In this document: piece by piece, positions 26,068 through 62,405 of the stretch | Layout: each line of letters opens with the position of its first letter | How positions within the stretch are numbered: the first letter of the stretch is position 1 | Virus record (IMG/VR): IMGVR_UViG_3300023202_000247 | Span: 186,001 to 250,000 of that record | Strand: one strand, 5' to 3' | DNA length: 64,000 bases | Translations under genes and position numbers: made by a program | Notes under the pieces: model-generated | Database searches by the model: none | What the model was told of the DNA's origin: nothing | Seen by the model: the letters and a program-made list of their open reading frames with translations, nothing else

Positions 26068-26757
26068 ATGGCTTTACGTTTACAACAACCAGGCATTCAG
26101 CCTCTCGGACAATTTGATGGTTACGACGCCGATTACTTGAACGTTCTCGGTGGTGAGGTTGGTAGCTTTATTGGAGTCGATGTTAGCGGAACTGATATTG
26201 CTGCTGTTGATGCTGATGGTTCTGACGGTTACGTCGGATTGCCACCAGCTAACACTCGTCCAGCAATCACTGTTCAGTTGGCATCTGGAATGCGTCCGCT
26301 TGGCCTAATCGATGATGGTACTCTCCATTACGGAACCCTATTCGGTCAGGTTGTAGGTGGAGTTGCTGGAAAGGTAGTTACTGGCGGCGCAGTTCTCGGC
26401 CCACACACCGCGGCTGCTTCTGGCAAGCTAACTTTCTGGGACAAGCCAGGAACTTACGCTGTAACTTTGGATGCTGTCGACACCGATTCGGATGGTCTCG
26501 TACCAAGCAACGGTTCGTTGGCAGTTGGCGACGCTCTTTATGCAACCAGTGCGGGTCTATTGACTCCTGCTTCTGCAAAGAGCTTCGAGGCTGGTCCTGC
26601 TATAGTTGTTGCTCGATTCCTCGAGTTCACAACTGATCAGAGCTTGGTCACCACTCCAAATTACCTAGTTTCTGCTTTGAACTCCCCATCTGGTTCAGGT
26701 GCACAGCAGTTGAACTTCACACAAGCAATCATTCACTTCCACCCACCGGGTTCCTGA
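26068..26757 (+). CDS. head decoration (cement) protein
   Basis: Directly upstream of the major capsid; G/A/V-rich; codon bias of a highly expressed gene; VGDALYATSAGLLT motif. Confidence 0.7.
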   Translation: MALRLQQPGIQPLGQFDGYDADYLNVLGGEVGSFIGVDVSGTDIAAVDADGSDGYVGLPPANTRPAITVQLASGMRPLGLIDDGTLHYGTLFGQVVGGVAGKVVTGGAVLGPHTAAASGKLTFWDKPGTYAVTLDAVDTDSDGLVPSNGSLAVGDALYATSAGLLTPASAKSFEAGPAIVVARFLEFTTDQSLVTTPNYLVSALNSPSGSGAQQLNFTQAIIHFHPPGS

Positions 26758-26771
26758 TAGCTGAATGAAAA

Positions 26772-26805
26772 CGGGGCACCCGCCCAGGGTGCCCCATTTA
26801 TTTTT
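26772..26805 (+). terminator. terminator-like hairpin between the decoration and major capsid genes
   Basis: GGGGCACCC-GCCCA-GGGTGCCCC followed by ATTTATTTTT. Confidence 0.65.
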
Positions 26806-26908
26806 ACTTTAGATTTATATATTGCTCGTTTCGGCGAGATAATAATAAAACAAAATGGCTATTGATTTCAATCGGATAGTCTCACCCCAACAACAATACG
26901 GAGAATAA

Positions 26909-27922
26909 ATGAGTTTATTTACCCAATCAGGCGAGTCGAATGGAGTTAGCGTAAAGGACGCTCTCGACACTCTCGTCAAATATGCAGCAATTATTGAAGA
27001 GAATCAGCCGTCCAATGCGGCTCTCGCTGGTCGTCCAAGTTTGAACGACGACAAGCGTGATGAGTTGATTTCTCGCGCAATCCTAACTAACGAGGGTAAG
27101 GTTGCTCTTGCTCAGGCAATGGCCAACCCAATTCGTCGCAACCTTGATTACCAGGGTATTGCACGTCGTGCCCTAGTCGTTGATCCACTACCACAGGGTG
27201 CAACTCCAACATATGACCGTGATATCGACGTTGCGGCAGTTGTGGTTTCCAGCAATGGTGCTGGTCCTGAGAGCCGTGTGTTCGGCGACCGCGTGGTTGT
27301 TCCAACATTCGAGCTTTTGTCGAACCCAACCGTTCGTATCTCTGAGGTACGTCGTCGTAGGTTCAACGTAATTGACCGTGCCGTTCAGAAGGCGCGTCAA
27401 GAGATCATGGCGCAAGAGGACGCGAACATTTTCGCAGCTCTTGATAACGCTGGTACCGTCGAAAACACCGCACAGGATATTTCGGATGGTGGTCTGTTGA
27501 AGCGTGACCTTGTTGAAATCAAGGTCCAGATTGATCGCTGGGACCTTGTAACAACCAAGTTCTTCATGAACATCAATGAGTTTACTGATATCCTCAACTG
27601 GGGATCCGGCGGTGGTCAGGGACCAACCGGTGGTGAGGTAGACCCGGTTACTCAGCGTGAAATTCTACAGACTGGTTTGTACGCTCACATCTGGGGCGCG
27701 GACCTCATGGTCTCGAAGATCGTTCCACCTGGCACTGTTTACGGTTGTGCAGACCCAGAGTTTGTGGGTGTGATGCCGATTCGCCAGGACATTGAGGTTA
27801 TGCCTGCGGACGAGCCGAAACAGCTAAAACTAGGTTGGGTTGTTTCCGAGGAAATCGGAATCGGCATCGTCAACGCTCGCGGTGTTGCTCTTGGTCGCAA
27901 GAGCACCGTAGTTGGCGCGTAA
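26909..27922 (+). CDS. major capsid protein (HK97 fold)
   Basis: GGAG SD; LDYQGIARRALVVDPLPQG..YD, IMAQED, TGLYAHIWGADLMVSKIVPPGTVY; biased codon usage; followed by a terminator. Confidence 0.9.
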   Translation: MSLFTQSGESNGVSVKDALDTLVKYAAIIEENQPSNAALAGRPSLNDDKRDELISRAILTNEGKVALAQAMANPIRRNLDYQGIARRALVVDPLPQGATPTYDRDIDVAAVVVSSNGAGPESRVFGDRVVVPTFELLSNPTVRISEVRRRRFNVIDRAVQKARQEIMAQEDANIFAALDNAGTVENTAQDISDGGLLKRDLVEIKVQIDRWDLVTTKFFMNINEFTDILNWGSGGGQGPTGGEVDPVTQREILQTGLYAHIWGADLMVSKIVPPGTVYGCADPEFVGVMPIRQDIEVMPADEPKQLKLGWVVSEEIGIGIVNARGVALGRKSTVVGA

Positions 27923-27970
27923 TCTGAGTAAAAACGGCTAGTTAGACGGCTAGTTAGCAAAATTAGCTAG

Positions 27971-28010
27971 AAAAAGGGTCGGTGTTGAAACACCGACCCT
28001 TTTTCGTTTT
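27971..28010 (+). terminator. rho-independent terminator after the major capsid gene
   Basis: AAAAAGGGTCGGTGT-TGAA-ACACCGACCCTTTTT. Confidence 0.85.
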
Positions 28011-28074
28011 TCCACACACCCAAATGAACCCAAACAATTTGTCGAGTCATATTATATTATCATGTATATATTGT

Positions 28075-30048
28075 ATGAATTTAGATGAGGTAAAATATCT
28101 AGTTGAAAATGGTATGTCGGTGAGTAAAATTGCCGTACAACATAATTGTAAAACAAATGATATTAAAGATATAATATCGAAATATAATTTATCCTTAGTA
28201 AAAGAGAGCTTTTCTGATGATAAAATTGATGAGATATGTCATTTATATAAACTTGGAGTGAGTGCAAAGCAACTTGGTAAAAAATTTTCAATAGATAAGC
28301 GTAGGATTCAGCGTTGGGTTAAAGAGCGCGGAATTTTGAGAAATAAAAATGATAGTCATCGTATCAAGTTTTTTAATCAAAATTATTTTGATAAAATAGA
28401 CTCAGCAGCAAAAGCTTATTGGCTTGGTTTTTTCTATGCTGACGCTTATAATTCAATCAAAATAAATACATTTTCAATTTCATTGAAACGTGAAGACAAA
28501 GCGCATCTTGAAAAATTATGTAACATATTGAATTTAACTACTGAAAATATATTTGACGGCTATATGTCAGGACATCCATATTCAATATTAAAGCTTTACA
28601 GCAAGCATATTTGTTTAAAAATGACAGAGCTTGGATGTCCGGTTGCGAAAAGCTTTATCATAACATATCCGAACTGGATGCCAAAAAAACTTGAACATCA
28701 TTTTATACGAGGATATTTTGATGGAGATGGTAGCTTAAATTTCACTTTAAATAAATTTAAAAATAAAGAGTGGAAAGTTTCTATTGTGTCAACAGACACA
28801 TTTTGCGAATCGATTTCCAATATATTGCTTCATCAAAATATAAAATTTTCAATAAATAACATATCAAAAACCGGAAAAAATACTAGTAATATAGAAATTA
28901 AAGGAAATGATCAAACTTTTAAATTAATGAATTGGCTATATAATAATTCAAATCAAAATATTAGATTAGATCGAAAATATCAATTATTTTTAGATTTAAA
29001 AAACCAAATGTTTATTAAAAATAACAACATCAGTTTACAACTTGGAAATTTAATTGAAATTGATGGACAAAAATTATCCGCGAAATATATTAAACAATTA
29101 AACAAGAATGAACGTGAATCATTGGTAATGCCAATTTATAACCACTTCAGAAAAACTGGATGGCAATATCCAAAAGTACATAAAGACATTTTAATTAGAG
29201 ATTATCAAAAGCTTATTGATAAAGAGATAGATATTGATAACGTTTATTTAAACAATAATGACAGAGTTTGTACAAATATATGTCATCATTTTTGTGAGTC
29301 ATATTATAGAGCTGGAACTAGAAGTATAATTGATGTGTGGAATGATGATGAAAAATTCTTATCAGTCATAAGAAACAGACTTGTATTAGATTGGCAATCA
29401 AAAACCAATGAAACATTTAATATTACTGGAAGAATGATGATTCAGGGAATTAAAAGTATGATGCTAAGTAACCCTATAAGTATATTTAAGCCGGTCATAG
29501 CAAAATACATTTGTATGAAATATTCTAATCCTGGAGAGTTAGTTGGAGATTATTCGGCCGGATTTGGTGGAAGATTACTTGGTGCTACATCGTGCGGACG
29601 CAGATATATCGGAACAGACCCCTTAACCGTTCCTGATTTAATAGATATGGTTAAATTTTATAATTTAGAAGAAACGGTAAGGCTTCATCAAGTGTGTTCA
29701 GAAAATTTTGCATTGGAAAAAAACTCAGTTGATTTATATTGGAGTAGCCCTCCATACTTTGATAAAGAAAGATATTCTGATGAAGAGTCTCAAGCTTATA
29801 ATCGTGGTGAAAATTATTTTTTTGATGTGTATTGGAAAAATACATTAAAAAATGTATATCATGCACTAAAGCCAAACAAATGGTTCGGATTAAATGTAAA
29901 AGATGTGCCTCTTATGGTTGATATGGCAAAACAATTTTTTGGCGAACCAAAAGAAATTATATATCTCTATACTAGAAGAAATCACTTAAACAAATCTTCA
30001 AATAAATATAAATTAGAACCAATTTACATGTTTTACAAAAATGCGTGA
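28075..30048 (+). CDS. HTH-LAGLIDADG homing endonuclease fused to an amino (N4C/N6A) DNA methyltransferase
   Basis: KAYWLGFFYADA and HFIRGYFDGDG; C-terminal DYSAGFGGRLLG (SAM binding) and SSPPYF (catalytic); very AT-rich; likely start ATG 28075. Confidence 0.85.
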   Translation: MNLDEVKYLVENGMSVSKIAVQHNCKTNDIKDIISKYNLSLVKESFSDDKIDEICHLYKLGVSAKQLGKKFSIDKRRIQRWVKERGILRNKNDSHRIKFFNQNYFDKIDSAAKAYWLGFFYADAYNSIKINTFSISLKREDKAHLEKLCNILNLTTENIFDGYMSGHPYSILKLYSKHICLKMTELGCPVAKSFIITYPNWMPKKLEHHFIRGYFDGDGSLNFTLNKFKNKEWKVSIVSTDTFCESISNILLHQNIKFSINNISKTGKNTSNIEIKGNDQTFKLMNWLYNNSNQNIRLDRKYQLFLDLKNQMFIKNNNISLQLGNLIEIDGQKLSAKYIKQLNKNERESLVMPIYNHFRKTGWQYPKVHKDILIRDYQKLIDKEIDIDNVYLNNNDRVCTNICHHFCESYYRAGTRSIIDVWNDDEKFLSVIRNRLVLDWQSKTNETFNITGRMMIQGIKSMMLSNPISIFKPVIAKYICMKYSNPGELVGDYSAGFGGRLLGATSCGRRYIGTDPLTVPDLIDMVKFYNLEETVRLHQVCSENFALEKNSVDLYWSSPPYFDKERYSDEESQAYNRGENYFFDVYWKNTLKNVYHALKPNKWFGLNVKDVPLMVDMAKQFFGEPKEIIYLYTRRNHLNKSSNKYKLEPIYMFYKNA

Positions 30049-30051
30049 ATA

Positions 30052-30414: not shown

Positions 30415-30420
30415 ATATGT

Positions 30421-34601: not shown

Positions 34602-35879
34602 ATGACAAATTTAAGCTCAGGTGTAAAGAAGTTTCCAATAAACTTTACCGTAAAAAATATATCATCTAAAAAACTTAAAATTTTTGGATATCCAATAGAG
34701 CCAGGAAGACAACGCGACTTATTGGCAATTCCATATGTTAGCGAAGAAGACATCAAACTGTCTTGGATAAAAGGTGACCTTTATGTCAAACGTCAAGCTA
34801 AAGAAATATCGATAGTTTCAAGTTCAATTAATCTCATAACATTTGATGCAGATTTTCAGTCTTATCTTCATAACAATGGTGTTGCAGCTGGTACTGAACT
34901 TGACCTATCTCCAATTCAAGAAAATAAATTAGATAGAAGTTATGATAGATACATCAACGTAGAAGATTTTGGAGCAGTTGGTGATGGCGAAACTGATGAT
35001 ACGGTTGCAGTACAAGATGCAATAAATGCTGCAAATGGTCAACCAGTTATTTTTACTGGTGGAAAGATATATTATTGTCCATCAGCACCATTGACTATAA
35101 CAAAATCATCATCACTTATTGGTATGGGTTTTCCACGTGCAAGATTGGATGGATATGTTATATATGATGCACCATCTGATCAAACCGAGTTGCAGTTGGA
35201 AAACTTATGGATACGCGGAACTGATGAAATATGTTTACTTTTGAAATCTCCAATAAGTAGAAGAAGTATATTTAGAGATTTAGAGTTTGATGGAGGTACT
35301 GATGCTGCTATTAGGATAAATAATAGTTGTATAGGTACGAGTTGGCAAAACATTCTTATTCGCAATGCTCCAAATTATGGTGTTAGAGTTGATGAAACTG
35401 TAAATATTAATGCAACACAATGGCGCAGTTGTAGATTCGTTGGTACTAAAATTGCTGGGTTTAGAGCCGGTAGCACTAAAGGATCGTTGTATGAGATTCA
35501 ATTTCACGGGTGCTTGTTTGAGGGTAACTATGGTACTGGTTTAGATATTGAATGTGGAGTTAACTTTAATGTAACAGGGTGTCATTTTGAACAAAATGAT
35601 GGATATGATATTATAATGGGAAGCAATAACGGTATAGTTGCGTGTAGGCTTAGATTGGTAGACACAGTATTTTCTGCTCAGGGAGATGATAACCCGCCCC
35701 CGCGCAGAATATTATTTAGAAATCATCATTCTGTGTTGATATTAGACAATGCTCATAGTGGCGCAAGTGTAGATGGTCAAAATCAAACGGCAGGTTCTAT
35801 AATTCACATATTAAATTATTTTGGCAGTATATTAATTGATAATTTTCCTGCTGAGAAAATAAAACAATGGCCAGAATAA
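34602..35879 (+). CDS. anchor domain plus pectate-lyase-like beta-helix (tailspike-like) protein
   Basis: INVEDFGAVGDGETDDTVAVQDAINAA (pectate_lyase_3 start) and beta-helix repeats; N-terminus paralogous to 30421. Confidence 0.8.
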   Translation: MTNLSSGVKKFPINFTVKNISSKKLKIFGYPIEPGRQRDLLAIPYVSEEDIKLSWIKGDLYVKRQAKEISIVSSSINLITFDADFQSYLHNNGVAAGTELDLSPIQENKLDRSYDRYINVEDFGAVGDGETDDTVAVQDAINAANGQPVIFTGGKIYYCPSAPLTITKSSSLIGMGFPRARLDGYVIYDAPSDQTELQLENLWIRGTDEICLLLKSPISRRSIFRDLEFDGGTDAAIRINNSCIGTSWQNILIRNAPNYGVRVDETVNINATQWRSCRFVGTKIAGFRAGSTKGSLYEIQFHGCLFEGNYGTGLDIECGVNFNVTGCHFEQNDGYDIIMGSNNGIVACRLRLVDTVFSAQGDDNPPPRRILFRNHHSVLILDNAHSGASVDGQNQTAGSIIHILNYFGSILIDNFPAEKIKQWPE

Positions 35880-52500: not shown

Positions 52501-53080
52501 TGTTACAACTTTGATAACTGGTGATTTGACCGGGTGGATTGTTGAAAGAAACAAAAACCAAACGGTAACCACCGAAATTCGTACGGGTTCCGTTGGAACG
52601 CATGCTGTTCACAACCCGTTGAACGATCCATTATTTGTTGGTTCCGGAGTTGTAGACCTCAACTTCCGTGGTGTTGATGGTGATGAAAGTGTGATAAATC
52701 CAATGACCATAAATTTTCTGAGCAGCGGTTCTGTTTTGAGAGCTTTATGGTCGGTATCACTCAACGATGTTCTTCCAAATGATACATACGTTGTTAGTTT
52801 GAATATCAATACGAGATGTACCGTGAACCCAACAGACGGAGATGCAACTCTTTCGTTGGCCAATCAGGGTTCATCCACTTTAACTGATACTGTGGATTTT
52901 ACATCAGGAGCTGGTTATACACCAGCTGCGGTTGAAAACCTCATAATCACACCAGGCACACCCACGGATTATAGAATTTCAGCCTCGGAGCAAACTACGG
53001 TTATTTTTGCAGCTGATGGTCAAGACGGTTCCAACTTTATTATATATGGCGGAAACCTTTCGATAACATATAGATGGTAA
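49520..53080 (+). CDS. large beta-helix (pectin-lyase-like) fibre/spike protein
   Basis: GGVILVKAGVYYLSETVNIPAGITVMG; many N/S/T-rich beta-helix rungs; two ITIGDG/FTVGDG units. Confidence 0.75.
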   Translation: MVKKFIGSGRAREGGLAAVHRQDFKAHTTGGDWRHKAKQIDMSPGISTFNNVFNSSTVQGTLEKMASVISTLGQGYITIGDGYDTGIYNAPPLDQAFADALTNSRLQSGGVILVKAGVYYLSETVNIPAGITVMGEPGGTYIFGQMNEKPMFHLRTGNDRFNLAGGSFGTIRNVEPIDQIKFYNLVLGDNTDGYFESSGVAIPTMTTTGFLECEVGSNVVVEDCTFLGRVNPTFPPLEITKRGIFYAGTNPGKPTALFVKDCYFDMLQSAVEFDGPTEGNTDSLRVESCRARLFGDTTSSNREDVCFVSFNLCNAHFESNLHTAASNNFQTTCFYLKNTVVSNPERVRVSMVNNTGGITNSTSTYSTNELLNFFYNDYTTTDFEAVKIGNSWGRDYNSSWFFTVGDGTSSVGDLNGSNALEIAFQRSDIGNITTGEGTQDVCIVNPGTYTLTTGGTSNMIKLVGNDRNGVKPVINLNSGSGTDANSNPTTSVGHLVKNIEFASNGASFNTITVIAGSTSSNRYALVENCKFSNSGIDFDGMNGSIDNVVDIEVKDTQFDQDGTYNDNIGMYSSGNASSILLERCSFTNLGYALQISSGSSVRDSQITLRDCNLNQNPYSTPAEKIGNASPSGNDNYVYISDTNARVLLENTTILCNAPGFFSTSRINSSLAVLGDFDKYIYIFARDIIIESSELTGPAQTFSDGGTPYALPTLSVTPGRFLTVSNSDLTGSLALQLTGSAFTNIGGTDTTGIKFHNSRFNGTGLGSVDGTCVDLDCPDYVVGSSDFRRPTISISNCFVDNKNGSNTGLGVRHTNQTTAKGYDAGGALQVYAPGWQVFCDSMYCAAEFNGTSTATGIVQLGAAVFDVIGDASTANFNFASVELSNNEFLLDRFASAGLAESTNVVTRAPYININGNSFFRDPNASSATNPNNYLEIWNNPVSTGGSGCTVTGNIFSNRNATGGLGLQAIFVASGSGENGIITDNVFDSPYVNSTSVTTLITGDLTGWIVERNKNQTVTTEIRTGSVGTHAVHNPLNDPLFVGSGVVDLNFRGVDGDESVINPMTINFLSSGSVLRALWSVSLNDVLPNDTYVVSLNINTRCTVNPTDGDATLSLANQGSSTLTDTVDFTSGAGYTPAAVENLIITPGTPTDYRISASEQTTVIFAADGQDGSNFIIYGGNLSITYRW

Positions 53081-53503: not shown

Positions 53504-56500
53504 ATGACGGTTTACCCGTTTGATTTCGATGATGATGAGACAATCATCAGAATCGATGATAACATCAGCCAGCTTGGTGGCACAGCAATAAACCAGATTC
53601 GTGATGCTATTTTTGCGATGCAGCAAGAATATGGCATCAATCCCGCTGGTAGCGCTGGAAGTGTAGCTAATAGACTAAATAAAAGCCTAGATGCAAATGG
53701 AAACATAAAGGCATCTGCTCTTACGTCCATAGGCTTAGCTACACTTCCAATAGTTGACAATCAAGTTGCATCCAATGCCGGAATAAAAGAAACAAAATTG
53801 TCATTGGATTTTAGCACCGGTGACTTGAAAACTCTAATAACGACAAACAAAGCGTTAATTGACTCATTAGTTACTTTTACATCAACAACTAACGGTAACT
53901 TACTTACACACATAGCTGGTGGTACACTTCTTGCAAATGGAGACCCAGCTCGTCACGTTGCCAGTCAGATTGATTTGAATGTAGTTCCAACGGATCCTAG
54001 AGATACATCGTATTCATGGACCGGCCTATTGGATAAGGATGGTATTCAACGTGCGGCGACACAGGTTGCCCAAGCATTGCTTTTGATAAACAATGCGTTG
54101 GTAACACACGAAAATCTTATATCAAATGGTGAGGCTCATCCGGCAGCAGCTATCAGTGTTGATACTGATCCATTTACTGAAATTCCGGTAACAGCCACTA
54201 CGGTTCAGTCGGCATTGGAAGCGATTGATGATTCCGATCGTTTGACGATGGGTGTTCACAGAGCAAGCATGCACTCGAATGGAGTGATGAAAGAGGTTCG
54301 CAGTGAATCACTCGTATTACCAGATGGTTACAGTCAAAATATCGTTCCACCAACACCGGTAAGTGCCTTCTTGGTAAAGTCACCAGCAAACACGCCCATA
54401 GACAACAATGTCACTGGTGATGACGTTGTTGTATTTAATCCAAATAATAGTGGATTTATATTTGACGGATATTTTGCAGCAGTACAGCCAGGCGATTATC
54501 TACGCATCAATTATGGTGACGGTTTCGAAGCTCTTTACATGATTGAGTCCAAGCGCTTTCAGCCAGATACGGAATGGGTTGTTAGACTCAACGGTGTCAA
54601 TATATCGAGTACGGATGGTTATGATGGCTATGCTAGAATAGATAGACGCTTGTATGACAATAACACCGCTGGTGTTCTTGCATGTGCAGCTGCAAATAAT
54701 GATATAGACAGTTCCATTCGTGGTAGCGTTGTAGTTGGAAATCCAAGAGCTGCAAATGCTTTGGGCATAGGGTTCGAACCAAACCAGCTCGATGCAGATC
54801 ATTACAAACTTTACCTACATTTATACCCATCTGGAAATCCAGTAGATAAGGTAATTGAACTTCCAGCTATCGATGTTACTGGTAACGCCGGTGCAACACC
54901 TGGACAGTATACGCTCGAAAGAGTTGTTGCGGCAACCAATGATGGTTTGAGAGCAGCTGGTTATAATTATAGATTCCTTGCATATGGTCACAATGGTGAA
55001 TTTGGTATCATGTTAACTGATACTATAAATAATGCAGGCTTTTCAATAGTTAGCGGTATTCTCTCTGGTGCTACATTGGGAATAGGTTCGTTTACTGAAA
55101 ATGTGGTTGGAGATGCCAATGATGGATTGGATCCATTGGGCTTCGGTAGTTCCAGGGCAGGCATTGCAAGTCCGAAGTTTACACCAACGTTTAGTAGTGA
55201 ACTTGGTGCGGCAAATCTTCCGACCATTGTTATTCCGCCATTAAAAAATAGATTTTATGTTGCAGATGGAACAAGGCTCGACACATTTGCAGACACATAC
55301 CTTGCAAATGAAGATGGCTACTGGGATGCAAATCTAACCGCTCGCACTCCAGTTGGAACTACAACTGTTGAAGTTACATATATCGTAGAACTCGGATTAG
55401 AAGCAGCAGGTCTTGCCCCTGGTAAAACAATTACAGTTGCTCCAGCGGTTGATTTTGATAACTCGCTTTATCGTGATGTTGATTATGGTAGATTCATAAT
55501 CAAAGATGTTACATTTCCAAAGCCATGCCCACCAGGATCGGACGGCCAAACTATCATTACGGTTATAAATGGTATTCATGCTGCGGCAGCTCCGGTGACA
55601 ACTTCGTCATCACCAACTGTACCGGTTAGATTGTATTTTGGTGAAGATTCGGTTGGATTCAATGAGTTGAATATCATAAACAATGTCCAACCGGGCGTTG
55701 ACTATTTGAGATATCATGAAGTTTATATAGATAAAAATGGTAATACATTTAGTCATGAGCGTGCTCGATTGCCAGAGCAAGATGAAAGCTCAGAGCTTTT
55801 GGAAACAAACTCTAATTGGACCATCAAAAACGTTTCACCAAAGTTACTTGGTTGGCGTGATAGCAGCACATCGTCTTCATTTAGACGCTATGTTAGATTT
55901 TATGTATTAGATTATGATACAATTAGCGGAGAGTTTGACGGCTATATTGGTAGACGTGTTAGTGGATCGCCAAATGTAACCGATACTGGCCCAGTTGTTA
56001 GAGCGCGTAAGAATCAAACCACTCGATTCTATGATGGGTCAAATATAGATTTTGTAGAATTGGAGTTCTTTGATGATGACGTTTCACCCGGAACCGATAT
56101 CATGTTAACATCATCACCAAGATATGTTGATATAGAGTTGTTTCCAAGCTTAGCACTGGATGATGAACTCTTCTTGCTGGCCAGTTGTGAAGTAGAAGAC
56201 AATGTTGTTCAGTGTGTTACGGACCGTAGAGAATTTGGAAACACGAGTGAACAGAACTTTACAGAATCTGCCAAGAATTTCATAGAAGCTGGAGAACGTT
56301 ATCTACATGCGAATGGTGTGATTCGTGGACTTGGGTTCCGTGGAACGGATTCTAGCAACGATGGAGTGCTGTTGTTCGATGGTGGACTTGCAGTTGTTAA
56401 CGGAAAATTTATAGCTATTAACTCTCAAAGTGTTGAGATACCACAAATCAGTGAAGATGGTGTGTCACTACCGGATCAGGTTGACTGGGCAATATGTATC

Positions 56501-58690
56501 AATGAACATGGTTTGTATGAGCCAGTAATCATCACACCAGACAAGATACAGTTTTTTGCGTTGCTTGGTGGTGCTGGAACCAGTTACTATGTTCCATCCG
56601 TTACATTTAACGAACTAATTACAAAAAGAAAAGACCTGACCCCGGTTGCATTTGCAACTGTAACGATTGCATCAATAACAATCAATCAGGTTCTAGATGC
56701 TAGAAGATTCGTTACTGATGAAACAGCAAGCATTCCATTTAGCTGGGTGCCAGTATTGGATGATGATTCTTCATTTTCCAGATTAGAAGAGGTTATTGGT
56801 CACTTCAAATCATTCGAAGCGGTTCGAACGTGGGTTAACAATTATGGAGCTATAAACAACACTATCATTGTTCGCGGCCAACATACATTTGCATCAACAC
56901 TTGACTTATCTTTACTCGAGCAGGGAGTTAAATTTGTCGGAGATGGTTATGATGTTGAATGGTTATTAAGAGGAAATGCTGGTGTTACTCTTGGCAGCAA
57001 TGTTTCTATGGAAGGCATTAAGTTTATTTATTCTCCGGATAGTCCAACCACTACCGGCGGAGATTTCGTTAATGCAACAAATGGTGAAGGAGCATTAACT
57101 AGTACATCTGGTAACTTGGTTAATGTTTCTATAACAAATTGCAAATTTGAAATTGCAGAGTCGCTACACCCACCATTCATCAACATAGCGGGTGCATCTG
57201 GAGAATTACTGGAAAATATTGTAATAGATAACAACTATTTCTGGGACGATCCAGACAGTCTTGCAAGTGAAGAAGATTTAACTGGAGCTATTGTTATAGC
57301 TTGTACGAGCGCCGGAGGCTCAACTCCAGCTGTTGCATCCAATGTTAGAATAACAAATAATAGATGTAATCTTTCACAGGGAATTTATGTTACATCATGG
57401 GATTATACAGACCCTGGATTATCATGTATCGATGTTCTAGTTGAAGGCAACGCATGTGGAAATATCGGTTATCTTACAACGAGTGAACCAAATGATGATG
57501 TAATTTATCCTGGTAGAAATTCGAGCTTGGGTATAGCTCATGCACCCAATTTGACAATCCGGGGCAATACTTGCCGTCTGATACAGACATGTATTGCAAC
57601 GGGTGTCGCGACACTTGATGCAACAACATATGGGTGCGGTCATGTAACCATAACAGAAAACTCTGCAAACTGGATATTTACAGAGAATAGAAATGATTCT
57701 GGTATAGATGGATACTCTAGCTGTAATGTAAGCAACAACAAACTACAAGCTTTTGATGATACTTATGTTACACAATTCAACTCAGCAATGGGTCTGGTGA
57801 ACGCAGCTATCTTTACAAATGGAACTAGTGATTCAACTGATACAGCAGTTGTTCACGGCAATAACATTTGTGGTGGTACATTAAGCGGATCAACATATAC
57901 TTATGGCTACGGAATTTACGCTAGAAGTGGCGGTCCGGTAACGGATAACACCATTAGAGATTTTACTACTTCTGGTATTACGTTTGCATTTGGAGCGGAT
58001 GGTTATACGGTATGTACCGGTAATATCATTGATAGAAAAAATATTTCAATATCTTCATACATTGCCTATGGCGCTGGCTCCGGTCTTATTGTGAACAATG
58101 TTTTCAGCAGTCCAACGATTGATGGAAGCAGCACAGCCACGTTGAGCAATGTTGGTGGCGGCTCATTCGTTGCTGAAAAGAACAAGAATCAAACCGTTGA
58201 GGTAAATGTATCTGCATCATCTATAGGCACGTGGTCGCTAGAGAAATTCAACGATGGATTTGCATATATTTTAAACCCATCAAACTATAGTTCTTCTATT
58301 TATAGATCGACATTTGGAGCAACAGCATTACTGTATGCACAGGCCGATGCAGATGCAAGTGAAAGAATGATTTTCCAATGGTCTGTACCATTATCTGCAA
58401 TCATTCCTCAAGGAACACGAGTCATTGGTGTATCGGTTGATATTGCGAACATCGGCGCAATATCAGTGCCACCCGGTTATGGCGTTTCGTTGGCTCTGAG
58501 AGAGTTTGATGGAGTGCCCGTTGATTCAGTAGCTGATTCTTTTGACAATACGGATCATACGGTAACGTTGTCATCTTTGACCCAGACCTGGACGGCTGAA
58601 AATAACGAGCTTGTGTTTACAGCTGATGGCGATCAAGCTATCACATTTAGGGGATTTGTTTATCAGTTTATAGTAACTTGTCGTTGGTAA
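53504..58690 (+). CDS. very large virion structural protein (collar/fibre) with a C-terminal beta-helix
   Basis: N-terminal YP..D..INQIRDAIFAMQ motif; beta-helix C-half; C-terminal module shared with 49520; nine DGY motifs. Confidence 0.72.
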   Translation: MTVYPFDFDDDETIIRIDDNISQLGGTAINQIRDAIFAMQQEYGINPAGSAGSVANRLNKSLDANGNIKASALTSIGLATLPIVDNQVASNAGIKETKLSLDFSTGDLKTLITTNKALIDSLVTFTSTTNGNLLTHIAGGTLLANGDPARHVASQIDLNVVPTDPRDTSYSWTGLLDKDGIQRAATQVAQALLLINNALVTHENLISNGEAHPAAAISVDTDPFTEIPVTATTVQSALEAIDDSDRLTMGVHRASMHSNGVMKEVRSESLVLPDGYSQNIVPPTPVSAFLVKSPANTPIDNNVTGDDVVVFNPNNSGFIFDGYFAAVQPGDYLRINYGDGFEALYMIESKRFQPDTEWVVRLNGVNISSTDGYDGYARIDRRLYDNNTAGVLACAAANNDIDSSIRGSVVVGNPRAANALGIGFEPNQLDADHYKLYLHLYPSGNPVDKVIELPAIDVTGNAGATPGQYTLERVVAATNDGLRAAGYNYRFLAYGHNGEFGIMLTDTINNAGFSIVSGILSGATLGIGSFTENVVGDANDGLDPLGFGSSRAGIASPKFTPTFSSELGAANLPTIVIPPLKNRFYVADGTRLDTFADTYLANEDGYWDANLTARTPVGTTTVEVTYIVELGLEAAGLAPGKTITVAPAVDFDNSLYRDVDYGRFIIKDVTFPKPCPPGSDGQTIITVINGIHAAAAPVTTSSSPTVPVRLYFGEDSVGFNELNIINNVQPGVDYLRYHEVYIDKNGNTFSHERARLPEQDESSELLETNSNWTIKNVSPKLLGWRDSSTSSSFRRYVRFYVLDYDTISGEFDGYIGRRVSGSPNVTDTGPVVRARKNQTTRFYDGSNIDFVELEFFDDDVSPGTDIMLTSSPRYVDIELFPSLALDDELFLLASCEVEDNVVQCVTDRREFGNTSEQNFTESAKNFIEAGERYLHANGVIRGLGFRGTDSSNDGVLLFDGGLAVVNGKFIAINSQSVEIPQISEDGVSLPDQVDWAICINEHGLYEPVIITPDKIQFFALLGGAGTSYYVPSVTFNELITKRKDLTPVAFATVTIASITINQVLDARRFVTDETASIPFSWVPVLDDDSSFSRLEEVIGHFKSFEAVRTWVNNYGAINNTIIVRGQHTFASTLDLSLLEQGVKFVGDGYDVEWLLRGNAGVTLGSNVSMEGIKFIYSPDSPTTTGGDFVNATNGEGALTSTSGNLVNVSITNCKFEIAESLHPPFINIAGASGELLENIVIDNNYFWDDPDSLASEEDLTGAIVIACTSAGGSTPAVASNVRITNNRCNLSQGIYVTSWDYTDPGLSCIDVLVEGNACGNIGYLTTSEPNDDVIYPGRNSSLGIAHAPNLTIRGNTCRLIQTCIATGVATLDATTYGCGHVTITENSANWIFTENRNDSGIDGYSSCNVSNNKLQAFDDTYVTQFNSAMGLVNAAIFTNGTSDSTDTAVVHGNNICGGTLSGSTYTYGYGIYARSGGPVTDNTIRDFTTSGITFAFGADGYTVCTGNIIDRKNISISSYIAYGAGSGLIVNNVFSSPTIDGSSTATLSNVGGGSFVAEKNKNQTVEVNVSASSIGTWSLEKFNDGFAYILNPSNYSSSIYRSTFGATALLYAQADADASERMIFQWSVPLSAIIPQGTRVIGVSVDIANIGAISVPPGYGVSLALREFDGVPVDSVADSFDNTDHTVTLSSLTQTWTAENNELVFTADGDQAITFRGFVYQFIVTCRW

Positions 58691-58862: not shown

Positions 58863-58910
58863 TGTCAGAAAAGGAATATATCCAGCTGGCCCGCTGGCTG
58901 ATAGCGATTT

Positions 58911-59010: not shown

Positions 59011-59049
59011 CCACGCCGGCCGGTTCTTGGAATAAAATTGTAAACTTAT

Positions 59050-59853
59050 GTGGTAGCCACTGGTAATAAATATAAATCTGATCTTTATTTACTAAATAAC
59101 ATAGTTCAAAATACTCAACTGACATATCCAAAAGAGTTGATTATTGGTTTGTTGAGGGATGAGTTTAGTAAAGATTCATACTATCACTATGTAAAAGATC
59201 CGTGGGGATTTCCTTTAACCCCAGATCATACTGATTTACCGTCTGATGCTGGTATAGAAGATGATACTACAACGCGCGTTTATATAGGCGAAGTATATCG
59301 TAATGATGTGGTTTTTTATCCAGCGCTCATAGTAAGAAATACTGGCAGTACATATAATCCGATTTCTTTCAATAGAAACCGTGAAACTGTCAAATATGGG
59401 ACAACATTTTTTGTTGACGGGTACGGCAACAAAACCGTCATGACCACGCCCACACATTATGTGTTTGCCGGAGCGTGGGATGGTTCATTTGCCATTGATG
59501 TTTACGCCAGGGGAATTAGAGCCAGAGATGATTTAGCAGAATTAACATCTTTGATAATGGCACACCTTCGTCATGACGAAATGTTGCGTTCCGGATTGTT
59601 GATAAAGGGGGTTTCGCTTAGCAGCAGCACCGAGACAGAGGACCGCGGCAATGAAAAACTTCACAAACAGACAGTTAATTTACAGGTGAGAAGTGAGTGG
59701 AGAGTGGAAATACCAGTAGAAAGCGTTGTTGATGCTATAAATATATGTGTAGATTTTGGAAATTTGAAGGAAGAGCCGCCAGTATTTGCTCCAAATATAA
59801 GTATAAATACAATCGTAAATCTACAAGAGTCTATAGTGGAGGTAGAGGCATAA
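59050..59853 (+). CDS. putative tail completion/terminator protein
   Basis: Directly upstream of the sheath; YPALIV..FAIDVYA..RDDLAE pattern. Confidence 0.6.
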   Translation: MVATGNKYKSDLYLLNNIVQNTQLTYPKELIIGLLRDEFSKDSYYHYVKDPWGFPLTPDHTDLPSDAGIEDDTTTRVYIGEVYRNDVVFYPALIVRNTGSTYNPISFNRNRETVKYGTTFFVDGYGNKTVMTTPTHYVFAGAWDGSFAIDVYARGIRARDDLAELTSLIMAHLRHDEMLRSGLLIKGVSLSSSTETEDRGNEKLHKQTVNLQVRSEWRVEIPVESVVDAINICVDFGNLKEEPPVFAPNISINTIVNLQESIVEVEA

Positions 59854-59945
59854 AAGCCTATAACTATATGAAAGGGTTATTGCTTGTAAAGGTAATAATT
59901 CAACATCTTAAATGAAATCATTTTACAAATTCAATAGGATTATAA

Positions 59946-62405
59946 ATGGCAGCTAACTTTCCAGGCGCAGGTAACGCAGTACCTCAATCAGTTGTTCAGG
60001 TTGATACTCTGAGTCAAGGCGCAAGTATTCCGAGCGGCTCACGAACCGCAGCAATCATGGGTGAAGGTCTTCGAGAAGAAACTTTGGTTCTAGATGCAGT
60101 TGGTGGTGGTAACGACGGTTTGAATCCATCTTACACATCAACAAATGGCTCTGATGGTCGTCACTTTGCCACAAGTGTTTTTCCTTTGATATCAAATAGA
60201 ACACGTTTGTTCAAAAATGGTATCGAGTTAAATCTTTTAGAAGACTCGATAAACTCCAATTCATTTGATGGTAGATTCGACGCGAGAGTTGAAATATCAA
60301 CTGGTCATATTGAGCTTCAGAGAGCACACCTCGTAGATCAAGGTGGTGAATATTTCAGAGCTAGTGGTTCTAATGTTGGTGACGGCACCATATCAAACCT
60401 AACATTGGTTGACAACAATGCTCCAGCTGAAACATGGACGGTTAGATGTTCAACCGTTAGGCGTGACGGATATGGAAATCCAATTGATGGCTATGCAATT
60501 TTTACAGTTCGTGGCAGTGTTAGTGGTGTAATTTTAGATGGATATGGTAATCAAATTACTTGGCAGTCAAATGGTACACTAACTAGCAATGGAATATTAC
60601 AGTTCTCAATTGGAGAAGGCTCTGTTGCTTTTAGAGAAGGTGATACTTTCATCATCGAAACTGATGACGGTGCATTGGTAGAAGGTGATAGTCTTACAGT
60701 GCGTTACATAGCAAGCACTGATATAGATGATCCAGAGTTTTTTACAGATGTTAATGTTCTTGCTGCAAAACACGGTAGAGCTTCTTTGGACAATACTTTG
60801 GCACTTGGTGCTCAACTTGCCTTTGCAAACGGGACTCCCGGCGTTTGGGCGATTCAAGCTGCACCAGCTTTGCCGAGACGTGTTTCATATACTCTCGTTA
60901 CCAGCGCAAATGGTGAAGATGATGAAGAAGATTTGACATTCAATCTTCCACTCAATGTCACACCGGATGTTGATTCTCGAATCAACTTCTTCGTAACAGA
61001 TCCTGTTACTGGTGTAGAAAGTCAAATATTACCAAACAAAGTTGACTTTTATGATCCGGCTATTACTTCCAGCCCATCAAGCTTCATTTTTGGTCCATCA
61101 TATTCGTATTCTTATACAGTTATCTTGGATGATGCTGTTGTAAAGAGTGCAAATGATGGAGTATTGACATCTGTAACTGGTACCACTGCTACATTGAGTA
61201 GTGCAACGGTTGCATTTGGTATTGATGATTTGAGTGGTACCAGAAGCATTCGCATTAAAAATTCTGGCTCTGGAAATGATGGAACTTATAGTATTGTGTC
61301 TATTTCCAACGGTGTGTTGACCATCAGTGATGCTGGAGGATTTGTCACCGAAAGTTCAGTTGAGTTCGAGGTATTGGACAGTGTTGCAACAAGTGCAAGA
61401 ATATTGTTTACAGATGACTTGGCGTTGAGCCTTGGTCAGTCACTTCGCGCAACTGTTGTTGATAACAAAGATGCTGATTTCTTTGATGCTGGTTGGACCA
61501 ACGCATACGCATCTGCTGAGAAGATTGAAACAAGCATGATTGTTCCGCTTCCAAAGCAGACAATTAGCGTAATCTTCCAAAATGGAAAAATTCACGTTGA
61601 GAAGATGAGTCAAATCAAGCAGAAGCGTGAGCGTTTGTTGTTCATTGGAGCAATTAGCGGATTGACCCCGGCCAATGTTATTGGAACCGAGCCAGCGGCT
61701 GTAGAAGATATCGGAATTTTGGAGGGAATCCAGGGAGACGATGTTGAAGAGATTTTAAGCGGAAGCATCGAAGACTTGGCCGATTATGGTGTGCAGGATG
61801 CATTTGGCGATTCATTTAGGGTTGTTTACTTCTATCCGGACCAAATCGTTGTTCAGGTTGGGTCGAGTCAAGAATTGATTGACGGCTTCTATCTAGCAGC
61901 AGCGGCAGCTGGTTGGTTTAGTGGCAAGAGCCAAATCAACTTGCCATTGACGAACAAAACGCTGTCTGGGTTTACAATTTTGAGAGATAAATTGTTTGCT
62001 CCAATAACTGTTGAGAATATCACAGCAGCTGGAATTACTTTGCTACAACCGGTAATTGGTGGTGGTAGGGTTATCTGGGGCAAGACAACTACAACAAGTG
62101 GTTTTGCGGAAGAAGAGGAAATTAGTGTTGTATTTATCAGAGACGCCATTGCTCGAGACCTGAGAAATACATTTAGAGGGTTCATTGGTCAACCTGAGAG
62201 TCCAACGTTCCAGTCAACGCTTTATGCACGTGCTGTTGATGCTATGCAAGCATTTCTCTCTAGGCGTTTGATTACAGATTATCGAGACTTGGTTGTTGTA
62301 CAGGATTCATCTGAGCCTCGTCAATGGAACATTAGAGTTGGTGTACAGCCGGTGTTCCCAGTGAACTGGATTTATATCCGCGTTGATTTTGGATTCTTCG
62401 GATAA
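59946..62405 (+). CDS. contractile tail sheath protein
   Basis: N-terminal P.SVVQV; C-terminal EISVVFIRD..FIGQP..WNIRVGVQPVFPVNWIYIRV. Confidence 0.88.
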   Translation: MAANFPGAGNAVPQSVVQVDTLSQGASIPSGSRTAAIMGEGLREETLVLDAVGGGNDGLNPSYTSTNGSDGRHFATSVFPLISNRTRLFKNGIELNLLEDSINSNSFDGRFDARVEISTGHIELQRAHLVDQGGEYFRASGSNVGDGTISNLTLVDNNAPAETWTVRCSTVRRDGYGNPIDGYAIFTVRGSVSGVILDGYGNQITWQSNGTLTSNGILQFSIGEGSVAFREGDTFIIETDDGALVEGDSLTVRYIASTDIDDPEFFTDVNVLAAKHGRASLDNTLALGAQLAFANGTPGVWAIQAAPALPRRVSYTLVTSANGEDDEEDLTFNLPLNVTPDVDSRINFFVTDPVTGVESQILPNKVDFYDPAITSSPSSFIFGPSYSYSYTVILDDAVVKSANDGVLTSVTGTTATLSSATVAFGIDDLSGTRSIRIKNSGSGNDGTYSIVSISNGVLTISDAGGFVTESSVEFEVLDSVATSARILFTDDLALSLGQSLRATVVDNKDADFFDAGWTNAYASAEKIETSMIVPLPKQTISVIFQNGKIHVEKMSQIKQKRERLLFIGAISGLTPANVIGTEPAAVEDIGILEGIQGDDVEEILSGSIEDLADYGVQDAFGDSFRVVYFYPDQIVVQVGSSQELIDGFYLAAAAAGWFSGKSQINLPLTNKTLSGFTILRDKLFAPITVENITAAGITLLQPVIGGGRVIWGKTTTTSGFAEEEEISVVFIRDAIARDLRNTFRGFIGQPESPTFQSTLYARAVDAMQAFLSRRLITDYRDLVVVQDSSEPRQWNIRVGVQPVFPVNWIYIRVDFGFFG

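Follow-up and report, generated by a model that had tools for sequence, protein, structure and literature searches.

An Asp-Gly-Tyr tripeptide enriched in the outer tail proteins of uncultured jumbo phages, and its possible role as a glycosylation sequon

Why should a three-residue motif recur in protein after protein along the tail locus of a huge phage? The question was raised by a 64,000-nucleotide stretch of DNA (positions 186,001 to 250,000 of IMG/VR record IMGVR_UViG_3300023202_000247; hereafter the window), in which an initial annotation had counted 27 Asp-Gly-Tyr (DGY) motifs in nine predicted external structural proteins against one or two expected by chance, and none in the terminase, portal, protease, internal head, major capsid and tube proteins. 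From this it was proposed that DGY is either a recognition sequon for a virion-wide modification (Tyr glycosylation, phosphorylation or sulfation, or Asp-Gly isomerisation) or a docking site for a small decorating protein. We find that the observation is real and stronger than was claimed, whereas the interpretation built upon it is only partly supported. Here, we detail the distribution of the motif, its conservation, and the readings that remain plausible.

A tripeptide excess restricted by protein class

Our set of open reading frames (ORFs) for the window comprises 53 plus-strand ORFs (20,049 aa), among which we find 28 in-frame DGY, all at or after position 26068 (Table 1). The 27 sites listed by the initial annotation are all correct, protein by protein; the single site it missed lies in a LAGLIDADG homing-endonuclease ORF and is probably a chance occurrence. 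Per-protein composition predicts 3.35 sites for the window (Poisson P 6.6e-17) and 1.3 for the nine proteins. DGY ranks first among all 8,000 tripeptides, the next being KLS at 1.5e-7, and 5,000 within-protein shuffles yield a mean of 3.38 (sd 1.83) and a maximum of 11. DGF, NGY, EGY and SGY are not enriched in this window. Moreover, the DNA pattern GAYGGNTAY occurs 28 times in frame, but only once in another frame and once on the minus strand, and codon choice at the sites matches overall usage. As the initial annotation supposed, selection acts on the peptide rather than on the DNA, and the sites are not copies of one domain.

Table 1. DGY-bearing ORFs of the window and contrasting ORFs without the motif. 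G004 is a complete relative of this genome; positions are those of the window.
Coordinates (strand)	Feature	DGY sites	Evidence and conservation
26068..26757 (+)	229-aa Gly-rich protein just upstream of the major capsid gene	aa 17, 53 (nt 26116-26124, 26224-26232)	Both sites conserved in the G004 orthologue at 57% identity; no PHROG or Pfam family hit, leaving the earlier label "decoration" unsupported
27982..30048 (+)	LAGLIDADG homing endonuclease / partial DNA methylase ORF; probably not part of the virion set	aa 192 (nt 28555-28563)	Site not conserved in G004
34602..35879 (+)	425-aa pectate-lyase-like beta-helix tailspike-type protein	aa 183, 333 (nt 35148-35156, 35598-35606)	Pfam Pect-lyase_RHGA_epim E 5.9e-10; PHROG tail-spike hits; sites not conserved in G004
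41782..42120 (+)	112-aa protein	aa 21, 29 (nt 41842-41850, 41866-41874)	Site 29 conserved in G004 at 39% identity
42117..43025 (+)	302-aa protein (start given as 42129 in the initial annotation)	aa 115 (nt 42459-42467)	Site conserved in G004
45971..47575 (+)	534-aa protein	aa 26, 186, 189, 230, 287, including DGYDGY (nt 46526-46543)	Weak fn3 and virion-structural hits; four of five sites conserved in G004, whose orthologue carries 7 DGY
49520..53080 (+)	1186-aa protein of unknown family	aa 81, 192 (nt 49760-49768, 50093-50101)	Both sites conserved in G004 although overall identity is only 31%
53504..58690 (+)	1728-aa protein of unknown family	aa 274, 321, 371, 374, 604, 812, 1147, 1402, 1499, including DGYDGY	In 14 orthologues site 274 is invariant (14/14), sites 371 and 604 are kept in 11/14 and site 812 in 9/14; many other DGY are lineage-specific, including insertions carrying 4 DGY
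59050..59853 (+)	267-aa protein just upstream of the sheath gene	aa 123 (nt 59416-59424)	DGY in 17 of 18 distinct orthologues
59946..62405 (+)	Tail sheath, 819 aa	aa 174, 181, 198 (nt 60465-60473, 60486-60494, 60537-60545), in an inserted beta-domain	Sheath Pfam and PHROG hits over the C-terminal third; DGY in 44, 52 and 56 of 73 distinct sheaths, with 9-12 synonymous 9-mers per site; residues 127-240 resemble the FlgL/FlgK outer domain (Z 8-9) and a gpD-like fold
26909..27922 (+)	Major capsid protein, 337 aa	none	phrog_2522 E 1.4e-74; no Ser/Thr-rich C-terminal tail
62423..63046 (+)	Putative tail tube, 207 aa	none	Position after the sheath gene; 47-63% identity across the clade; weak virion-structural hit
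1113..25969 (+)	Head-module ORFs of the first 26 kb (about 9,000 aa): terminase, portal and protease identified, the others unnamed	none	Composition predicts 1.3; a tenfold enrichment would give about 13

The excess is confined to one class of virion proteins, although the term "external" is an inference for most of them. In the 212-279 kb block of the genome, DGY occurs 49 times against 3.7 expected, while its composition-identical permutations are scarce (DYG 2, GDY 4, GYD 12, YDG 5 and YGD 3), and the probability that Tyr follows Asp-Gly is 28% in this block against 3.2% elsewhere. By contrast, the tube, the 1653-aa tape measure, and the gp25-like and gp6-like baseplate core have none, and the rest of the genome carries 14 against 10 expected. 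Accordingly, the motif is not virion-wide, as had been proposed.

The excess is also a property of a large clade of uncultured huge myoviruses that probably infect Bacteroidota. Across about 380 related IMG/VR huge phages the total is 630 against 61.6 expected, and every related locus tested shows about 4-28 fold excess. The complete relative G004 has 84 against 22.9, with DGY again the top tripeptide and the excess confined to its tail blocks. Controls are near 1 (phage G, 3 against 2.2; LE2-3, 4 against 3.2; unrelated viral loci, 8 against 6.8), with the exception of a mild excess in T4 (10 against 2.7). About half of the 45 (DGY)3 pattern matches in IMG/VR are in frame, and most of these lie in contigs with homology to this genome or carrying the clade sheath, apart from one low-GC family. 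No (DGY)3 match was found in 301 Bacteroidota genomes.

Conservation, turnover and the character of the tyrosines

Fifteen of the 28 sites are conserved in G004, whose orthologues are 31-63% identical, while other sites turn over with the count per protein staying similar. Sheaths that lose a site carry DGY at new columns and keep 2-4 per protein, and changes from NGT to DGY and from DGV/DGE to DGY occur at turn positions. Relatives carry tandem runs of up to (DGY)5. Selection therefore appears to act on the motif itself. However, in distant sheaths the three conserved sites read DSY, DEY and DDY, which shows that a structural D-x-Y-G element, independent of Gly, underlies some sites.

The DGY tyrosines behave as exposed residues for which Phe is not an accepted substitute. 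Replacements at DGY Tyr columns are 71% polar and 12% Phe, against 14% polar and 57% Phe at other Tyr columns, though these substitution counts are not corrected for phylogeny. DGY columns also lie nearer indels, and the sheath sites lie in an outer insertion domain. Structure models are of low confidence (pLDDT 53-58), such that exposure rests on indirect evidence; in the model of the 1728-aa protein, four of the five motif locations (274, 371/374, 604 and 812) sit at loop-to-strand starts, whereas site 321 falls in a predicted helix.

A downstream glycan cluster and competing readings of the motif

Just beyond the window, directly downstream of the DGY-rich fibre genes and on the same strand, lies a clade-conserved, syntenic 24-kb cluster encoding about nine glycosyltransferases and GDP-sugar enzymes. 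It includes GT4, four GT2, GT11, a GT1-like enzyme and a probable GT4-like 700-aa protein, together with GDP-mannose 4,6-dehydratase (E 2e-123), epimerases, an aminotransferase, an acyltransferase and a methyltransferase. No plus-strand terminator-like site was found in the first 3.2 kb of the cluster locus. GT2 clusters lie about 33-40 kb downstream of the sheath gene in the five long relatives (G001-G005), and two further relatives (G006 and G007) also carry GT2 genes, at other distances. The core genes of the cluster are conserved in G004, with GT4 at 61%. Searches for Pkinase, PCMT and Sulfotransfer_3 homologues found none. Of the modifications proposed at the outset, glycosylation is the only one with an enzyme set encoded in the genome.

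Our best reading, held tentatively, is that DGY is a short linear recognition motif displayed on exposed turns of the outer tail proteins (sheath insertion domain, fibres, spike-like and peripheral proteins) and serves as the acceptor sequon of a phage-encoded cytoplasmic virion-glycosylation system. The analysis itself establishes the motif excess, its peptide-level, class-restricted and clade-wide nature, its conservation together with turnover, the exposed-like and Phe-intolerant tyrosines, and the syntenic glycan cluster; that the cluster acts on virion proteins, that DGY is its sequon and that Tyr is the acceptor are inferences, with no direct evidence of any modification. Several considerations weigh against this reading. 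No bacterial or phage glycosyltransferase is known to us to use a DGY or Tyr sequon, and Tyr O-glycosylation is rare. The cluster may instead remodel the host envelope, which is the published reading for similar bS21 phages (PMC9723584; 10.64898/2026.10.24.761521), or may modify DNA. Motif and cluster are both clade-wide traits, and their co-occurrence consequently counts as one phylogenetic event rather than as independent contrasts. Finally, non-virion proteins show no DGY avoidance, which a promiscuous cytoplasmic enzyme might be expected to impose.

The rival that survives best, though we regard it as somewhat less likely still, is that DGY is purely structural and unmodified: an Asx/type-I' Asp-Gly turn followed by a Tyr whose hydroxyl hydrogen-bonds locally, similar to a tyrosine corner or stapling a hairpin, and reused by the beta-rich tail proteins of this clade. 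In the low-confidence models most of the motif locations sit at loop-to-strand transitions, several sites are invariant over deep divergence, the persistence of D-x-Y-G in distant sheaths indicates that D and Y matter there without the full motif, a hydrogen-bonding Tyr would also resist replacement by Phe, and T4 shows its mild excess. However, a generic fold-level propensity should not be specific to one clade, controls other than T4 are near 1, and other beta-rich virion proteins of the same genome have no DGY. Moreover, a lost Tyr is replaced mostly by polar or small residues, which is typical of exposed positions, counts are kept while positions turn over, and tandem (DGY)3-5 runs are not hairpin turns.

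It is possible, but doubtful, that DGY is an unmodified multivalent docking or adhesion motif, in which exposed Asp and Tyr would bind a common partner such as a host-surface polysaccharide, a small decorating or chaperone protein, or other DGY-bearing tail parts (for example, holding fibres against the sheath). The specificity to clade and protein class, the turnover with kept counts, the tandem runs and the exposed-like, hydroxyl-dependent Tyr would suit any trans-acting partner. Asp plus an aromatic residue is a common sugar-binding pair, and the DGY-rich proteins include a lectin-like Laminin_G_3 fibre and a beta-helix spike. Nevertheless, no candidate partner was identified, a tripeptide in many different folds makes a poor protein epitope, and a single ligand is unlikely since the hosts of the clade are probably diverse, member GC ranging from 30 to 56%. 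This reading also leaves the conserved adjacent glycan cluster unexplained.

A different covalent chemistry (Tyr sulfation or phosphorylation, Asp-Gly isomerisation, Asp hydroxylation or Tyr-Tyr cross-linking) is very unlikely. A weak Sulfotransfer_1-like ORF (E 2e-4, below the family cutoff) and a PhyH-family dioxygenase do lie in the glycan cluster, and Asp-Gly is prone to isomerisation; but neither ORF has an orthologue in G004, where the motif is present, the Pkinase, PCMT and Sulfotransfer_3 searches were negative, and known Tyr-sulfation sites favour Asp directly before Tyr. Least likely is an artefact of residue or dipeptide bias or of shared ancestry, in which the tail proteins would be mosaics of one ancient DGY-bearing module too diverged for BLAST to detect, since shuffles and permutations rule out composition, lineage-specific gains occur at new alignment columns and in insertions, and, although the 693-aa and 974-aa proteins share one DGY-bearing domain (E 1e-5) and remote homology cannot be excluded with BLAST, the other 45 sites show no mutual similarity.

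DGY in the context of other glycosylation systems

Virion O-glycosylation in mycobacteriophages (Freeman et al. 2023, as summarised in PMC12619734) likewise involves phage-encoded glycosyltransferases that add glycans to virion proteins in the cytoplasm, with a proposed shielding role. There, however, the glycans sit on the C-termini of the capsid and tail-tube subunits, whereas here the capsid and tube lack both the motif and any Ser/Thr-rich tail, the candidate sites are internal DGY turns in sheath, fibre and peripheral tail proteins, the cluster is far larger, and the proposed glycosylation is inferred from sequence alone. The general O-glycosylation system of Bacteroidota is discussed in PMC8698959. 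Its sequon, D-(S/T)-(A/I/L/V/M/T), also has three residues, starts with Asp and has a hydroxyl residue as acceptor, in the phylum that probably hosts these phages; yet that system acts in the periplasm on Ser or Thr at position 2, while DGY has Gly at position 2 and Tyr at position 3 and would have to be used in the cytoplasm. The D[ST][AILVMT] motif is not enriched in the tail proteins (59 against 85.6 expected). Chloroviruses and giant viruses are large viruses whose own multi-enzyme glycan pathways glycosylate capsid or fibril proteins at non-canonical motifs independently of host machinery, but these are eukaryotic viruses with Asn-linked glycans on the major capsid protein, whereas here the virus is a tailed phage, the motif is tail-restricted and Tyr is the putative acceptor. 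Tyrosine O-glycosylation of S-layer proteins in Paenibacillus and Thermoanaerobacter (PMC2943079) is a bacterial precedent for glycans linked through a tyrosine hydroxyl on a surface array protein, although it depends on a membrane oligosaccharyltransferase acting outside the cytoplasm, is not known to us to use a DGY sequon, and occurs in unrelated organisms. EF-hand/dockerin DxDxDG calcium-binding loops offer a resemblance of another kind, as the 974-aa fibre outside the window has dockerin-type loops reading DVNGDGYINDAD and DVDGDGYITSTD (Pfam Dockerin_1, E 3.5e-10), in which Tyr occupies the loop position after Gly. However, only 2 of 49 DGY in the tail block of this genome, and 6 of 630 in the clade, have the [DN]x[DN]xDG context.

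In the model we tentatively favor, a glycosyltransferase would recognise the Asp-Gly turn and glycosylate the tyrosine hydroxyl on folded or folding tail proteins, the best candidate for that enzyme being the conserved GT4 gene immediately after the last fibre gene. The neighbouring GT2, GT4-like, GT1-like and (in this genome) GT11 enzymes would then extend the glycan, using GDP-sugars made by the cluster's own GDP-mannose dehydratase and epimerases. DGY may thus be the tag that directs sugars onto the virus particle, and the result would be a glycan coat on the tail periphery.

The DGY excess and its genomic setting

The analysed stretch comprises bases 186,001-250,000 of a single 321,461-bp viral contig with 40.6% GC, and it carries the plus-strand late module of an uncultured jumbo myovirus. 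From the terminase to the putative tube, this module follows the order given in the table below, with a run of mostly unnamed proteins between the homing-endonuclease ORF and the tail sheath gene. Beyond it lie the tape measure (1653 aa), gp25-like and gp6-like baseplate proteins, two very large fibre-type proteins (2226 and 974 aa) and then a sugar-gene cluster. The genome encodes ribosomal protein bS21, which links it to the bS21-encoding huge phages predicted to infect Bacteroidetes (PMC9723584), and sheath relatives occur in MAGs labelled Bacteroidales, Chitinophagales and Hydrogenedentes. No cultured relative was found, with sheath hits being at most 34% identical over a fifth of the protein and TerL hits about 25%.

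Coordinates of the features considered in the phage genome and in related or control sequences (L numbers are our labels for retrieved loci)
Feature	Coordinates	Locus coordinates	Remarks
Terminase	window 1113-2963
Portal	window 2980-6195		Unusually long (1071 aa); portal match at aa 127-375; weak hits in aa 371-783 to segments of RNR, thymidylate-synthase and PhoH PHROGs, a pattern suggesting an inserted intein or homing element
Protease-containing protein	window 12315-15860		1181 aa
Head-module protein	window 15897-17165		422 aa; 21% aspartate; no family hit; may be an acidic scaffold or internal head protein
Major capsid protein	window 26909-27922
LAGLIDADG endonuclease ORF	window 27982-30048		Immediately after the major capsid gene; combines LAGLIDADG homing-endonuclease, HTH and partial N6/N4 DNA-methylase domains; the only DNA-level hit to a known phage (a crAss-like cr6_1 endonuclease, 84% over 62 nt)
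Tail sheath	window 59946-62405		Inserted beta-domain at aa 127-240
Conserved aromatic column of the sheath core	window nt about 61881-61889		Sheath aa 646
Putative tube	window 62423-63046
MORN-like paralogue family	genome 26,644-76,843		Six ORFs; small repeat proteins sharing the block REDGPAxEHADGYKEWYVNG
Ribosomal protein bS21 gene	genome 141,025-141,165		Pfam E 1e-15
Tail block	genome 212-279 kb
Glycan-biosynthesis cluster	genome 278,991-302,687	L094:91-19368, L095:288-4687	About 24 kb
GT4 gene (candidate transferase)	genome 278,991-280,145	L094:91-1245
Tubulin/TubZ-like (PhuZ-type) gene	genome 302,707-304,086	L095:4707-6086
Ribonucleotide reductase large subunit	genome 310,040-313,747	L095:12040-15747	Interrupted by an intein with a LAGLIDADG domain
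Low-complexity tandem DGY runs in relatives' large tail proteins		L137:15-1706, L111:1308-10976	Related IMG/VR contigs
Phage T4 control	72-121 kb	L032

The initial annotation had listed 27 Asp-Gly-Tyr (DGY) tripeptides in this stretch, and its observation is confirmed: all 27 are present, and there is one more in the homing-endonuclease ORF. Per-protein composition predicts 3.35 occurrences in the window's 20,049 aa, such that the observed 28 gives a Poisson P of 6.6e-17 and makes DGY the most over-represented of all tripeptides by ten orders of magnitude. Five thousand within-protein shuffles never exceeded 11. All of the window sites lie at or after position 26068, and the first 26 kb (about 9,000 aa) has none. 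The DNA pattern GAYGGNTAY occurs 28 times in the coding frame, once in another frame and once on the opposite strand, and codon choice at the sites equals general usage. Selection therefore acts on the peptide, and a DNA-level motif such as a methylation site, restriction site or repeat was rejected. The excess is also specific to DGY, in that within this window DGF occurs 7 times against 4.2 expected, NGY 3 against 3.1, EGY 1 against 2.8 and SGY 0 against 3.6, although across relatives DGF shows a weaker excess (49 against 19.7). In the tail block DGY occurs 49 times, while its five composition-identical permutations occur 2-12 times. Together with the shuffles, this rules out composition or dipeptide bias.

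Genome-wide there are 63 DGY in 98,337 aa, of which 49 fall in the tail block, against 3.7 expected. The rest of the genome is at expectation (14 against 10), and six of those 14 belong to the MORN-like paralogue family. Within the tail module, the tube, the tape measure, the gp25-like and gp6-like core baseplate proteins and several others have none, whereas the sheath, the 693-aa, 2226-aa and 974-aa proteins and the large proteins upstream of the sheath are rich in the motif. In this block 28% of Asp-Gly dipeptides are followed by Tyr, against 3.2% elsewhere, and 60% of Gly-Tyr dipeptides are preceded by Asp, against 8% elsewhere.

Distribution across the clade and among sites

The motif is a hallmark of a clade rather than a general property. 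A sheath profile finds 334-380 relatives in IMG/VR, with contigs up to 459 kb and locus GC of 30-56%, and a profile of the most distant sheaths, used to search for an outgroup, returned the same clade. Every locus retrieved shows an excess of about 4-28 fold, amounting to 630 against 61.6 in total. In the complete 458,729-bp relative G004 (sheath 63% identical), DGY is again the top tripeptide genome-wide (84 against 22.9, P 8e-23), with the excess confined to the tail blocks and the first 240 kb having 8 against about 10. Controls are near expectation for the phage G tail region (3 against 2.2), Eggerthella phage LE2-3 (4 against 3.2) and about 18 unrelated viral loci (8 against 6.8). Phage T4 shows an unexplained mild excess of 10 against 2.7, or 3.7-fold, far weaker than in the clade studied, with its sites spread over gp7, gp8, gp12, gp18, gp27, gp28, three Seg endonucleases and UvsW. 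A general property of beta-rich phage tail proteins was accordingly rejected as the main cause. A search of IMG/VR for the DNA of three tandem DGY found 45 stretches, about half of which read DGYDGYDGY in frame; most of those are in contigs that share proteins with this genome or carry the clade's sheath, with one low-GC family as an exception. The same pattern was not found in the 301 Bacteroidota genomes searched (about 1 Gb), which led us to reject the possibility that the motif was borrowed from the host.

The sites are independent of one another, and are both conserved and renewed. All-against-all BLAST of windows of 50 aa either side of the 49 tail-block sites found one related pair of proteins, the 693-aa and 974-aa proteins, which share one domain, and nothing else significant; a single repeated domain was thus rejected at the level that BLAST can detect. 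No flanking residue is strongly preferred. Fifteen of the 28 window sites are DGY at the aligned position in G004, including both sites of a protein that is only 31% identical. Site 274 of the 1728-aa protein is invariant in 14 orthologues, site 123 of the 267-aa protein is kept in 17 of 18, and the three sheath sites are kept in 44, 52 and 56 of 73 distinct sheaths, through 9-12 different synonymous 9-mers. Sites are also gained: sheaths that lack DGY at position 174 carry two new DGY in an insertion near position 410, and the distant subclade that lacks sites 174 or 181 has DGY at positions 68 and 146, such that each sheath keeps 2-4. At such columns the alternatives are NGT, DGT, DGV, DGE and DGA, and an existing turn therefore acquires Asp and Tyr. 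Relatives also carry low-complexity tandem runs such as CDGYDGYDGYGGDGYDGYGTDGY, and (DGY)5 in a 3222-aa protein, with one such run reading (DGY)5-FGY-(DGY)2. These are nevertheless unlike a collagen-like repeat, with its long uninterrupted runs bearing Gly at every third residue, as most sites are isolated and the longest run seen is (DGY)5.

Structural context and the adjacent glycan cluster

The evidence on what kind of position the motif occupies is indirect but consistent. By sequence, no solved-structure homologue was found for the sheath or the 1728-aa protein; a Foldseek search with the whole sheath model was uninformative, and the two AlphaFold models are of low confidence (pLDDT 58 and 53). 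In the model of the 1728-aa protein, four of the five motif locations sit at loop-to-strand starts, while the sheath sites fall in the coil stretches between short strands. DGY columns lie closer to indel-prone columns than average, the median distance in the sheath being 3 against 10. The sheath sites lie in the inserted beta-domain, which resembles the outer domains of FlgL and FlgK (Z 8-9) and a lambda gpD-like fold (TM 0.49), whereas the recognisable sheath core is the C-terminal third. At nine Tyr columns where DGY is the majority, the non-Tyr residues are Phe 7, other hydrophobic 10 and polar or small 41, while at 60 other Tyr-majority columns of the same alignments they are Phe 259, Trp/His 55, hydrophobic 74 and polar 64 (Fisher 3e-11, from sequence counts that are not phylogenetically independent). 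The DGY tyrosines thus behave like exposed residues whose hydroxyl group matters. At a buried-type aromatic column of the sheath core (position 646), Asp pairs only with Phe or Leu and Tyr pairs only with Pro or Ser, with counts among 73 sheaths of DGF 45, PGY 12, SGY 5 and DGY 0. This may indicate avoidance of the motif at a buried site, or may reflect only one or two evolutionary events.

The last fibre gene is followed by a small 2H-phosphoesterase gene and then, on the same strand, by the glycan-biosynthesis cluster. The cluster encodes a GT4, four GT2, a GT11 fucosyltransferase, a GT1-like enzyme and a probable GT4-like 700-aa protein, as well as a methyltransferase, a hexapeptide acyltransferase, a PhyH dioxygenase, WbqC, a DegT aminotransferase, GDP-mannose 4,6-dehydratase (GMD; E 2e-123) and two further epimerase/dehydratases. 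No plus-strand terminator-like site lies in the first 3.2 kb of the cluster locus, which covers the first GT genes. GT2 clusters lie about 33-40 kb downstream of the sheath gene in the five long relatives G001-G005, and two further relatives, G006 and G007, also carry GT2 genes, at other distances. In G004 the cluster core is syntenic directly after the orthologous fibre gene, with GT4 61% identical, GT2s 44-56% and GMD 71%, but the fucosyltransferase, aminotransferase, acyltransferase, methyltransferase, dioxygenase and sulfotransferase-like genes are not shared. No Pkinase, PCMT (isoaspartyl methyltransferase) or Sulfotransfer_3 homologue was found in this genome, which is estimated to be 75% complete. 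A search of sequencing runs for evidence of co-expression returned only runs labelled DNA. Published work on similar phages notes many polysaccharide genes and reads them as envelope remodelling (PMC9723584; 10.64898/2026.10.24.761521), and neither text, as searched, considers virion glycosylation for them.

Interpretation and comparison with other systems

A motif that is clade-specific, independent of fold, limited to peripheral tail proteins, both conserved and renewed, tolerated in tandem and apparently dependent on an exposed tyrosine hydroxyl is most simply explained by a trans-acting partner that reads it. Over-representation on parts inferred to be exposed, and movement in position while the count is kept, are also what is expected of a short linear motif in sequon-directed protein glycosylation. 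The only partner for which the genomes offer a conserved, adjacent candidate is the glycosylation cluster, within which the GT4, whose sequence by itself reveals no specificity, is the candidate transferase. We therefore tentatively rank first, though with less than even confidence, the hypothesis that DGY is a sequon for cytoplasmic virion glycosylation with Tyr as the likely acceptor. What the analysis demonstrates is the DGY excess and its extension to a large clade, together with a syntenic glycan cluster; that the cluster acts on virion proteins, that any of its enzymes recognises DGY, and that glycans are attached to the tyrosine are all inferred. The link is circumstantial, as motif and cluster are both clade-wide, so that their co-occurrence is one event, and some sites, such as the three sheath sites that read DSY, DEY or DDY in distant members, clearly have a structural D-x-Y-G basis. 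The interpretation offered in the initial annotation, a recognition sequon for modification of the virion or a docking site, is supported only in part and remains unproven.

Among the rivals, a purely structural turn followed by a hydrogen-bonding Tyr ranks highest, although we consider it unlikely, and it draws support from the D-x-Y-G element of the sheath sites. The motif does not correspond to the tyrosine corner of Greek-key beta-barrels, in which Tyr lies three to five residues after the turn residue it hydrogen-bonds, with consensus LxPGxY or DxGxY: here Tyr directly follows Gly, no Pro or Leu context is enriched around 103 non-redundant sites, and replacements of the Tyr are mostly polar. 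A non-covalent docking or adhesion motif is somewhat less likely still. Calcium-binding loops of the DxDxDG or EF-hand type, with Asp or Asn at positions -4 and -2 before Asp-Gly, explain only about 1-4% of sites (2 of 49 in the genome's own tail block and 6 of 630 in the clade), though they do account for the dockerin-like DVNGDGYINDAD loops of the 974-aa fibre, the only part where this criterion holds. Other covalent chemistries appear improbable, as does hidden shared ancestry of the sites.

The nearest precedents differ from the present case in several respects. Mycobacteriophage virion glycosylation likewise involves phage-encoded glycosyltransferases, which here are linked to the structural gene module, but it targets the C-termini of the capsid and tail-tube subunits, and in this phage the capsid protein and the putative tube have neither DGY nor a Ser/Thr-rich C-terminal extension. 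The Bacteroidota O-glycosylation sequon D-(S/T)-(A/I/L/V/M/T) is periplasmic and uses Ser or Thr, and that motif is not enriched in the tail proteins of this genome, being somewhat under-represented there (59 against 85.6 expected) but not in the rest of the genome (208 against 196). Further precedents are giant-virus self-encoded capsid glycosylation at atypical sequons and tyrosine-linked S-layer glycans. Relative to these, the present case would represent a tail-restricted, Tyr-containing three-residue tag in huge phages.

In its boldest form, which we regard as doubtful but which the evidence does not rule out, a whole clade of huge Bacteroidota phages (about 380 members in IMG/VR) would coat the outside of its tail with a self-made glycan, attached in the cytoplasm to tyrosine in a previously unknown three-residue sequon. 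This would be the first sequon defined for a tailed phage and a new Tyr-directed protein glycosyltransferase specificity, and a soluble enzyme of this kind with a three-residue tag would be a useful glyco-engineering tool. If DGY is a glycosylation sequon, it would show that tailed phages, like giant viruses, can build sequon-directed glycan coats, and it would give a sequence rule for predicting modified sites and exposed surfaces in hundreds of uncultured huge phages. It would also reassign the abundant glycosyltransferase “auxiliary metabolic genes” of huge phages, read until now as envelope-remodelling genes, to virion construction. Literature searches for a DGY or Asp-Gly-Tyr motif in phages found no description of such a phenomenon. 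Even if no modification exists, this is a tripeptide under strong, clade-specific selection that is independent of fold, in the parts of the virion that contact the host, and it points to an unknown trans-acting partner.
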